From Monocercomonoides exilis PA203 (taxonomy: Eukaryota; Protista; Preaxostyla), in NCBI GenBank assembly GCA_001643675.2, contig LSRY02000017.1, positions 248,001 through 312,000 of the forward strand: a stretch of DNA of 64,000 nucleotides, written 5' to 3'. Made by a program: the position numbers and the translations under genes. Under the pieces are notes generated by a model. That model was not told where the DNA came from. It did not search any database and saw nothing but the letters and a program-made list of their open reading frames with translations. Each line of letters starts with the position of its first letter. Positions within the stretch are counted from its first letter, which is position 1. This document shows positions 42,101-45,196 of the stretch, one piece after another.

Positions 42101-43322
42101 ACTTAATGTTGATTTCACAGCCGTATTTGTCTTCCTCTTCTTCCTCCTCCTCCTCCTCCTCCTCCTCCTCCTCCTCCTCCTCAACATCAACAACAACACA
42201 GTATTCTTTCTCTCCCTTGTATTATGCCCCCACACTCACCCAGCTTCTGCTTCGTTGTACTGTCACCATCGCTGCCTTCATCAAAAGTGAACAATATCCA
42301 CACGTCGCATTGAAAATGGCTCCTGTTCTGCTGTGGGCATCAAAAGTTGGACTTTCTGTGCTGAATAATAATAATAACGATACTAATAATAATTTTGGCA
42401 ATAACAACAATAAAGAGGAAAGCAAAGAAAGAGGAGAAGATAATGTAGAAGAAGAAGCAGGAATGGTTATGCAGAATGGCAATGAGAAGGTTAAGAGTAA
42501 CAAAGAGTTGGCTGTTGAGCTACTGTCTATGGCATCGACTGGATTGTATCACTGCTCAGAGAGATTTGAATGTATGTTTTATTATATTGAAAATAACTAA
42601 CCAATAAAAAACTTTATTAATGAATTTATTTATTTATATTTTTTTTTTCTCTCTCTCTCTCTCTCTGGGATATATATAAACGCGTAATAGTGAATAAAGG
42701 AGCCGTATTTTCCGTTGTGAAGTTTACTGATCTGAAAAAGCTCATAGAGTTTGAACTTCATCATCTTTCTGTCAATTTTTTACAATATTAATAATTGTAT
42801 TTTCTTCTTTAATAAATGATTTCATACATATGCACATTTGGATTTGTGAATGGAATTTTAATCTTTTTTAATCAACTTTCTCTTTTCTTCTTCAAATTCT
42901 TCTTCTTCTTCTTCTTACACAGTTGTCCAAACATTCACATCTCATACCCTGCCCTCCGCTGTGTCGAAGAACTTGTCTGGGAAAAGAAAGAAAGGCAGAC
43001 GAATTTCATATCAGCTGGCATCATCCCAACACTTATCGAGTTCTTGAACCCTTCTCGCTACTCTCCAGCAGCTCCTTCTTCAAACAGCACTTCAGCGAAT
43101 CTTCCGTCTTATCCTTCAACTTTCTCGTTTCGCGACACTTATTTAATACATTTCTGTGTCCTTGCCATAAAAAATACTCAATTCAAAAATTCTGAGGGAG
43201 AGGCTGCTGTTCAGTATCATCCGCACATACGTGATTGGTTGAAACTGCTGGAGAAAGTTAACAATGGAACTATTGGAAGAGCAGCTAATTTATGTTTAAC
43301 TTATTTTTCAAAATCTTTTTAG
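37499..43322 (+). CDS. NEK-family kinase with a long low-complexity / ARM-like C-terminal region (multi-exon)
   Basis: LGRGAFG, VCK, IIMEYCDSGDL, HRDIKLENLFM, LGDFGFAK, spliced GTPQYFSPE, PYNSATDIWSMG, DPSKRPT. Downstream exons are joined by GT-AG introns. The start is approximate. Confidence 0.85.
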
Positions 43323-43545
43323 TTTACTTTATTATTTTTATGTATTTGTTTATTGATTAATTTCGACTAAAGAGTGTTTTGGGATTTTTTTTATTTTCAT
43401 TTTTATCTTTTTTTTATCTTTTCATCGTTTTTATCTTTTTTTATTTATGTATTATAATTTTGTACAGTAGCTTATTGTGTTACAGTATTAGTGTTTATGC
43501 CTTCATTTCACAAAAAGAAAAGTTATTGGAATTTTTGATCAGAAA

Positions 43546-44812
43546 ATGTTTGAATCAATAATTGTAATAAGAGGATCAGGTGAAATGGCAACTGGTATTG
43601 TTAATTGTAATTTAGATTAAATTTAGCGCATTTTTGTGGGTTATTTTAAAAGGAGTTGCCCATCGCCTTCATGTTTGTGGATTTAAGCTTCTTCTGACGG
43701 ATATCCCATTTCCTCTCACAGTAAGAAGAACTGTCAGTTTCTCTGAGGTTACAAAATGAATCTTTTGAATGATTTTATTATTTTATCATTTTTAATTTGA
43801 TATTTTACAACTTAGTGCATTTTTTCAAAAACAATTGAAGTTGAAGGAGTCACATCTGTGTTTCTTCAATATCCTGCATTACAGGAAAAAGAAATAAATC
43901 AACCAACGCATAATGAAAAGAGCGATGGGCAATTTCGAAATGCTATTGAAGAAACATGGAGACGTGTGGTTATTTTTAATAATTCATATTCTGAGCATTC
44001 ATGAATGTAGAGCACAAACTGCCAGTTATAATTGATCCAGAACTTTTGGTGTCTCGGCGCTTGTTTGGTGATGCAATCCAAGTTGTTATTGATGCAACTA
44101 TTAATAAAAAAAATATTGCAAAAACAAATCCTGTTTGACTTTCATTTATTCCATGAAATATATTAACTATGATCTTTTCAATCTATTAGTCTTTGGCACC
44201 TCTGGTAATTGGACTTGGACCTGGTTTTTCTGCACCAAAAGATGTTACAGCTGTTATCGAAACAAATCGTGGGCATGACTTGGGAAGAGTAATTCTTGAA
44301 GGCTCTGCAGCTCCAGATACTGGAATTCCCGGGGTCATAAAAGGTGAGTCTGTTAGAAGAGTTTTAAGAGCACCAAAGACAGGAGTGATGAAGTGTTTAG
44401 TGGAAATTGGTGATGAAGTAATTGAAGGTCAGACTATTGCAATGATTGATGGTATGTTGAATAGTCAATCTCATAAATCTTGAGTTTTCATTAAATCATT
44501 TTAAATCTAATGTCTTGTAAATCAGATGAGCGTATTTATTCTCAATTAACAGGAGTTGTTCGTGGTCTTTTGCATGATGGAGTGAAAGTTGAACAAGGAA
44601 CAAAAGTAGGTGATGTTGATCCAAGAGGCAAAGACGGAGTTGATTTTAGGTTGATAAGGTTTGTTAGTGGCATTTGACGAACATTTTGTGTTTATGTTTT
44701 CTACGTTTGCTCATTTAGTGACAAGGCTCGTGCTTTATCAGGCTCAGTTCTCGAAGTTATCATTAGATTTTATAATAAAACACTGTTTCCTTACTCATCG
44801 TCTACACCTTGA
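43546..44812 (+). CDS. yqeB: YqeB-family selenium-dependent molybdenum hydroxylase system protein, 7 exons, 300 aa
   Basis: Exons 43546-43594, 43653-43747, 43816-43963, 44011-44132, 44190-44451, 44526-44658 and 44719-44812 total 903 nt, and all introns are GT-AG. The product reads IVIRGSGEMATGVAHRLH..PLTVRRTVSFSE..EVEGV..LPVIIDP..VIDATINKKN..APLVIGLGPGF..VIETNRGHDLGRVI..AAPDTGIPG..RVLRAP..GVVRGLLHDG..KVGDVDPRG..ISDKARALSGSVLE. Confidence 0.93.
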
Positions 44813-45196
44813 AAAATTGTTAATAGATGTCTAAAACTGTAGATTATTTATTCATTTGTAATTTATAATAGCATTTTTGCTTCCTTGTTCAATTTTGATT
44901 CTGTGTATTTTGCCAGTTTTTACATTGCAATTCGTACTTTTTGTTCAACTTTCGTTTTTATAACTTTTTTCCTTTCATGTTTTTTGATCAGAAACAGGAA
45001 GCAACAAAAATGCCGCGCGAAATGATGATAATATGAATGAGATGAATGAGATGAGACGTGTGTGGTTGTGTGAATAAACGCAGTGTGATTAAAAACTTTG
45101 AAAAAGAGAAATAGCAAATGTACGCAAAGAACTGTAGAACTGAAGAACCCGAAAAAAGAAAGAAAAGAAAAGATATATTCATAAAAATTAAGTGAT

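Follow-up and report, generated by a model that had tools for sequence, protein, structure and literature searches.

A transcribed, six-intron yqeB gene and candidate partners of a labile selenium cofactor system in the oxymonad Monocercomonoides exilis

Of the ways in which cells use selenium, the least understood is the labile selenium cofactor found in molybdenum hydroxylases, which has been treated as a prokaryotic trait. The family YqeB (NCBIfam TIGR03309) is strictly limited to selD-positive prokaryotes, and partial phylogenetic profiling places yqeC, SsnA, and YgeW among the partners of prokaryotic YqeB and the selenium trait (PMC2276186). On xanthine and urate, a yqeB deletion mutant of Clostridioides difficile behaves like a selD mutant (PMC11448449), and a molybdenum hydroxylase that was purified from Clostridium sporogenes lacking a functional selD has been described in the literature as inactive. 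SsnA and YgeW belong to a selenium-dependent 2,8-dioxopurine pathway (bioRxiv 10.1101/2025.04.24.650524). The reviews and surveys searched discuss yqeB and yqeC for prokaryotes only. YqeB-family genes were reported in the metamonad Spironucleus salmonicida by authors who considered them the first eukaryotic examples and who speculated on selenocysteine-independent selenium use in that organism (Xu et al., 2014, PMC3916229). Here we report on a yqeB gene of Monocercomonoides exilis PA203, located at positions 43546-44812 of the forward strand of a stretch of 64,000 nucleotides (assembly GCA_001643675.2, contig LSRY02000017.1, positions 248,001 to 312,000), which is referred to as the window. 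It is an intact nuclear gene with spliceosomal introns, and it is transcribed and processed, since its spliced form occurs in RNA. Regarding its function, we assign a probability of about 0.55 to the reading that it encodes a functional stand-alone YqeB that would act with YqeC and an XdhC-like protein in the selenium-dependent maturation of xanthine dehydrogenases (XDHs).

The gene consists of seven exons and six introns. A script-based frame check revealed that the joined exons amount to 903 nucleotides and form an uninterrupted frame of 300 codons followed by TGA. The introns are 58, 68, 47, 57, 74, and 60 nucleotides long, each starts with GT and ends with AG, and their GC content of 16-33% is below that of the exons (38.5%) and of the window (36.4%). 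The RNA evidence is provided by contigs of four metatranscriptome runs (X1 to X4) of one study, a 2024 "synthetic metagenome," which were compared with window positions 43300-45000. All six splice joints were present in these contigs, with neither other joints nor sequence differences. Individual contigs cross up to four or five exons, and coverage extends at least from 43422 to 44935. The joints fixed the end of intron 1 at 43652, resulting in the protein segment ...ATGVAHRL, and intron 3 at 43964-44010, resulting in ...TWRQHKL. The motif RGSGEMATG straddles the exon 1/2 junction, and ISDKAR straddles the exon 6/7 junction. The features of the locus, all on the forward strand, are as follows.

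43422..43545 (+), 5' untranslated region, minimum extent, with a repeat upstream of 43422; contigs of X1 and X2 from 43422, one to 43555
43546..43594 (+), exon 1, with the ATG start and the N-terminal RGSGEMAT(G), a nucleotide-binding-like motif; RNA joint 43594/43653; tblastn match of bacterial YqeB
43595..43652 (+), intron 1, 58 nucleotides, GT..AG, phase 1; joint in X1 and X3; 22% GC
43653..43747 (+), exon 2; TIGR03309 positions 14-43, E 1.1e-06
43748..43815 (+), intron 2, 68 nucleotides, GT..AG; joint in X1, X3, and X4
43816..43963 (+), exon 3, with a 21-amino-acid insertion (amino acids 66-86); no profile match on its own; covered by RNA contigs
43964..44010 (+), intron 3, 47 nucleotides, GT..AG; unambiguous joint 43963/44011 in X1, X2, and X3
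44011..44132 (+), exon 4; TIGR03309 positions 74-105; colinear tblastn matches of bacterial YqeBs
44133..44189 (+), intron 4, 57 nucleotides, GT..AG; joint in X1 and X2
44190..44451 (+), exon 5, with the conserved core (GLGPGF, ETNRGH, DTG.PG) and the start of a barrel-sandwich (biotinyl/lipoyl-like) region; TIGR03309 positions 111-195
44452..44525 (+), intron 5, 74 nucleotides, GT..AG; joint in X1 to X4
44526..44658 (+), exon 6, with the GDVDPRG motif and Asp265; TIGR03309 positions 198-232, E 1.6e-11
44659..44718 (+), intron 6, 60 nucleotides, GT..AG; joint in X1 to X4
44719..44812 (+), exon 7, with (I)SDKARAL, the C terminus, and TGA at 44810-44812, read from the sequence; TIGR03309 positions 240-255
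44813..44935 (+), 3' untranslated region, minimum extent; spliced contigs of X2 and X3 reach 44935

An earlier note on this DNA, made from the letters alone, had called six GT-AG introns of 47-74 nucleotides, a stop-free spliced protein of 300 amino acids, and YqeB motifs from RGxGxxATG to ISDKAR, and had considered the gene to be nuclear and not a contaminant; the RNA joints and the joined frame bear out these calls. Contamination of the assembly, or a decaying pseudogene, might have been suspected from the fact that the closest relatives are all bacterial. Both are excluded because exact removal of six spliceosomal introns is seen in RNA. In addition, the composition is host-like, the frame is open with family-invariant residues conserved, the contig is of megabase scale, and the flanking genes are eukaryotic, the neighbor of yqeB being an ISWI-type SNF2/Helicase_C/SLIDE gene. 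The artefact explanation is therefore refuted, and we give it practically no weight.

Assignment to the YqeB family was made exon by exon using hmmscan, whereas the joined protein was used in local alignment, tree construction, and blastp only. Five exons match TIGR03309 in colinear profile order, namely, at positions 14-43 (28.3 bits), 74-105 (12.9 bits), 111-195 (exon 5; 120.3 bits, E 9.4e-35), 198-232 (44.2 bits), and 240-255 (13.0 bits). Such a series of matches is not attributable to chance. The sum of 218.7 bits, obtained without exon 1 (16 amino acids) or exon 3, compares with a curated cut-off of 220 for the whole protein. The gene is of the short stand-alone form, as had been proposed from the letters, and not of the XdhC-fused form. 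Pfam searches of the exons provided a faint biotinyl/lipoyl-like signal only, and the Protein Data Bank contains no solved structure related in sequence to a bacterial YqeB. The genome searched comprises 82,301,135 bases in 101 contigs, the contig number of the published M. exilis assembly (PMC8767320), and a six-frame family search identified a single TIGR03309 locus in it. Exon 5 has 979 relatives in a representative library of 1.84 billion proteins, the best of which share 60-63% identity, and these relatives map back onto the window exon by exon in tblastn. Local blastp of the joined protein against proteins named YqeB or EF2563 family resulted in 220-238 bits and 43-46% identity. Conservation was assessed in an alignment of the joined protein with 75 bacterial YqeBs from named genomes. 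Of the 65 columns with at least 90% conservation among the bacterial sequences, the protein matches 61 exactly, Cys49 occupies a mostly-Ala column, and the insertion of 21 amino acids (residues 66-86, exon 3) is absent from the 75 bacterial proteins.

In a maximum-likelihood tree, the protein nests within the bacterial stand-alone YqeBs on a long branch (1.48). Its sister is a mainly Thermodesulfobacteriota group with a Shimodaira-Hasegawa-like approximate likelihood ratio test (SH-aLRT) support of 90, which is not decisive. The nearest rows in tree and alignment are metagenome-assembled genomes (MAGs) of Thermodesulfobacteriota and Chloroflexota, with at most 52% identity, a value reached by a Syntrophaceae MAG. 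The sequence comparison makes the bacterial origin of yqeB clear and supports no single donor group. Of the old lateral transfer from gut anaerobes suggested in the earlier note, the bacterial origin thus stands, but the nearest rows are not Enterococcus or Clostridia. The best explanation is that an ancestor of this oxymonad gained the gene from anaerobic bacteria long ago and that the six spliceosomal introns were acquired since. The same note knew of no characterized eukaryotic example and allowed that an annotation might exist; given the S. salmonicida genes reported in 2014, a eukaryotic YqeB as such is not new.

Searches for eukaryotic orthologues returned, among the matches listed, prokaryotic names only with a bacterial YqeB as the query, short fragments of at most 71% identity with exon 5, and no match with the last yqeC exon. 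A metagenome scan gave no match for exon 3 and matches of at most 67% identity for exon 5, again among those listed. These searches were restricted in length and in rows, and their blanks say little about other eukaryotes. The best exon 5 fragment, on ENA ERZ2647878 NODE_36199, appeared to be an exon-split relative and was rejected, as it lies on a low-coverage bacterial contig with a frameshifted yqeB; on this contig, the broken yqeB adjoins an intact xdhC.

Partner genes were sought by searching all six frames of the genome with family profiles, an approach that could miss weak matches in short exons; loci outside the window are given with our labels for genome (G), contig (C), and locus (L). 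The genes that the earlier note had named for such a search include yqeC, selD, and molybdenum hydroxylases, and all of these were found, along with an XdhC-like gene. (i) One yqeC exon (G000:C50:386720-386992) reaches 73.1 bits with TIGR03172, the cut-off being 73.05, and 55.1 bits with Pfam YqeC. The predicted gene, read from the genomic sequence alone, has five exons (L004:914-2235, plus strand, corresponding to G000:C50:386133-387454) and contains the motifs GGGGKST, TTTTK, and VEADGA. In this prediction, the P-loop GGGGKST is divided across a micro-exon of 18 nucleotides (L004 1083-1100), the first intron (from L004 981) starts with GC and is probably of the GC-AG type, and a C-terminal extension of about 150 amino acids is without family matches. 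(ii) A selD gene with AIRS and AIRS_C domains is located at G000:C2:1004361-1005555 (minus strand) in three pieces of 164.2, 104.8, and 24.9 bits. The genome that holds this yqeB also carries selD, as do the prokaryotes to which the family is limited. The last selD piece runs into an open frame of 317 amino acids (L015:3576-4529, minus strand; G000:C2:1003575-1004528), for which no Pfam match was obtained at E < 0.01. (iii) The XdhC-like gene (L017, G000:C14:1218365-1221502, minus strand) matches XdhC_CoxI with 25.5 bits, and in tblastn it is matched in colinear order by the XdhC portions of bacterial fusion YqeBs. It is divergent and intron-split, with the pieces GTVGGGALEG, ICGGKATLLIEP, and LLIFGGGHCGHAS and a long Ser/Pro-rich stretch between. 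The genes for YqeB, YqeC, SelD, and the XdhC-like protein are scattered in the genome, and all bear introns. For the bacterial YqeB most similar to that of M. exilis, the gene order is mocA-yqeB-yqeC...xdhC, with xdhC belonging to the same operon as yqeB. Of 80 bacterial loci, 42 have yqeC no more than 6 kb from yqeB.

The genome contains three XDH genes with fused Fer2, FAD, and Mo-binding domains (L012:4822-9401, minus strand; L013:5232-9663, minus strand; L014:2995-7744, plus strand). Their products are most like mammalian XDH and score about 600 bits with TIGR02965 (xdhB) versus about 225 bits with TIGR03311 (Se_dep_XDH), both values being below the cut-off. The copy on contig C9 retains Gln767, Arg880, and the catalytic Glu1261, and Glu802 is replaced by Gln. 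The C9 and C14 copies read GGFGGKQ at the site that is GGFGGKE in mammalian XDH, and they may prefer substrates other than those of xanthine dehydrogenase proper. Published M. exilis tables list three XDH genes, one SEPHS, and two SsnA-like amidohydrolases, and these counts agree with our genome searches. The published annotation tables also contain a "MOCOS," which has an aminotransferase class-V domain only. The six-frame search of the whole genome detected no candidate for MOSC or MOSC_N, families for which the controls were positive in only 7 and 3 of 14 reference genomes, respectively.

These data raise the question of whether sulfur, and not selenium, is handled. YqeB, YqeC, and the XdhC-like protein could form a chaperone set that sulfurates the molybdenum cofactor (Moco) and inserts it into the XDHs, replacing the missing MOSC of a truncated Moco sulfurase. 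Such a role would suit XDHs of the sulfido-type eukaryotic or XdhAB kind, a MOCOS reduced to its class-V domain in a genome in which MOSC and MOSC_N are undetected, the presence of an XdhC-like gene, the frequent fusion of prokaryotic YqeB to XdhC domains, and the loss of the conserved YqeB Cys. It is difficult to reconcile with a family confined to selD-positive prokaryotes, with the genetics that link yqeB to the selD phenotype, and with the presence of yqeC, SsnA, and YgeW, which profiling likewise links to the selenium trait. We consider the sulfur explanation unlikely.

Of the purine-pathway genes, YgeW carbamoyltransferase (G000:C11:513323-514558, minus strand; L102/L103) is above the NCBIfam cut-off, with 602 bits for the joined sequence, and is found on the contig of yqeB at a distance of about 222 kb. 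Two intron-split SsnA genes are present (G000:C68:43822-45663, minus strand, and G000:C6:1519223-1521049, plus strand; L098/L099); the exon sum of about 417 bits compares with a cut-off of 455, and one copy is already annotated as "putative selenium metabolism protein SsnA." YgeY is ambiguous (182 bits, below the cut-off), with two identical copies on contigs C61 and C44. The genome search found a generic partial match for YgfK and weak matches for YgeX, and no ortholog of either.

The papers searched on M. exilis and Preaxostyla mention the selenocysteine machinery and XDH, and never YqeB, YqeC, or XdhC; molybdenum comes up solely through "MOCOS," which is listed in supplementary tables. The fuller set of yqeB, yqeC, XdhC-like, selD, XDH, SsnA, and YgeW genes in one eukaryote thus looks undescribed, and it apparently pairs RNA-verified yqeB introns with an absence of Moco synthesis.

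A role of YqeB in selenium-dependent XDH maturation is plausible in view of the genes present. In the mechanism we propose, (i) YqeB, YqeC, and the XdhC-like protein would receive and hold Moco, (ii) SelD would supply selenophosphate as the selenium source, and (iii) YqeB would install, or help to install, a labile selenium ligand, replaced or added, before Moco enters the XDH paralogues. One step of anaerobic purine metabolism would then depend on selenium. For the XDHs to be active, Moco itself would have to be obtained from ingested prey bacteria.

A number of observations weigh against this mechanism. (i) Judged by their sequences, the three XDHs are of the eukaryote or XdhAB type, not of the clostridial selenium-dependent type, and the family search of the genome retrieved no clostridial-type selenium-dependent hydroxylase. 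XDHs of the former type normally hold a sulfido ligand. (ii) The earlier note had also named mocA and Moco synthesis genes, and here the six-frame search of the whole genome gave no candidates, neither for MocA (TIGR03310), the usual companion of the system, nor for MoeA_N, MoaC, MoCF_biosynth (MogA), MoaE, and Mob_synth_C (the C-terminal part of MoaA); for each of these six families, the controls were positive in at least 11 of 14 reference genomes. Because Moco synthesis genes were not detected, cofactor loading of the XDHs is in doubt, and the cofactor would have to come from ingested bacteria; the organism may be unable to make Moco and may depend on that of its prey. Transfer of Moco from dietary bacteria is known in Caenorhabditis elegans. 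(iii) M. exilis possesses the selenocysteine machinery, which needs SelD (PMC6759080), and the presence of SelD is consequently not specific evidence. (iv) Asp265 replaces a Cys that is found immediately before ISDKAR in 71 of the 75 bacterial YqeBs. (v) The paper on S. salmonicida reports YqeB without mention of XDH or a molybdenum enzyme (PMC3916229), and YqeB may thus serve another role in metamonads. (vi) For YqeB, no biochemical function is known in any organism (PMC11448449). (vii) All RNA support for yqeB stems from one study.

Part of these points would be expected if YqeB had been repurposed for a job unrelated to molybdenum hydroxylases, such as selenium or sulfur handling for another acceptor, and if its co-occurrence with XDHs were coincidental. 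The S. salmonicida genes, the undetected Moco synthesis pathway, and the divergence of the protein (Cys replaced, an insertion of 21 amino acids, a branch of 1.48) are in line with this idea, but the joint presence of yqeB, yqeC, an XdhC-like gene, and three XDHs whose catalytic residues are intact is hard to explain if they are functionally unlinked, and 61 of the 65 invariant positions are retained. Repurposing appears to us even less probable than the sulfur explanation.

Selenium-dependent XDH maturation, which we prefer, can be extended to a chimeric system, in which YqeB, YqeC, and the XdhC-like protein, together with SelD and the MOSC-less, NifS-like "MOCOS," would selenate scavenged Moco, load the eukaryote-type XDHs, and feed a partial anaerobic purine pathway (SsnA, YgeW, and carbamate kinase). 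This extension is tentative, and we regard it as rather doubtful, though somewhat less so than the sulfur explanation. If true, it would represent the first labile-selenium molybdoenzyme in a eukaryote, combined with obligate cofactor scavenging.

Several consequences can be derived from these data. (i) Since yqeB is expressed and the partner genes are present (yqeC, selD, XdhC-like, XDHs, SsnA, and YgeW), the question of whether eukaryotes use the labile selenium cofactor becomes directly testable. An anaerobic gut protist may place selenium in a molybdenum enzyme, as some bacteria do. (ii) The apparent lack of Moco synthesis beside three XDHs raises the question of a scavenged cofactor in a bacterivore. 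(iii) With its six introns, yqeB cleanly exemplifies the full domestication of an old bacterial gene in an amitochondriate lineage, that of the oxymonads.

Among the known systems, the bacterial stand-alone YqeBs, such as EF2563 of Enterococcus faecalis and CD3478 of C. difficile, are of the same length class as the M. exilis protein and have colinear domains. They share with it RGxGxxATG, GLGPGF, ETNRGH, DPRG, and ISDKAR at 43-52% identity, as well as the co-occurrence with yqeC, selD, and XDH-family enzymes. In contrast to the bacterial genes, that of M. exilis is nuclear and has six introns, and its partners are dispersed and form no operon; the protein has an Asp for the near-invariant Cys and the 21-amino-acid insertion, MocA and Moco synthesis are undetected in the genome, and the presumed clients are eukaryote-type fused XDHs. 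S. salmonicida, compared here by its published description (PMC3916229), is likewise a metamonad with YqeB-family genes and selenocysteine machinery. Its description makes no mention of yqeC, XDH, or a molybdenum enzyme, whereas the M. exilis copy is intron-rich, RNA-verified, and accompanied by the gene set described above. In the long, XdhC-fused forms, namely, E. coli YqeB and the haloarchaeal pNG7241, the C-terminal part is homologous to TIGR03309 and is preceded by N-terminal XdhC_CoxI and XdhC_C domains; in M. exilis, the XdhC-like gene is separate, on contig C14. XdhC with NifS4 of Rhodobacter capsulatus and the eukaryotic Moco sulfurase (MOCOS/ABA3) are likewise accessory systems that alter the terminal ligand of Moco for XDH. 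Both install sulfur, and MOCOS does so using a MOSC domain, which is undetected in the M. exilis genome, whereas YqeB is a family separate from XdhC/NifS4 and MOCOS and is tied to selD.

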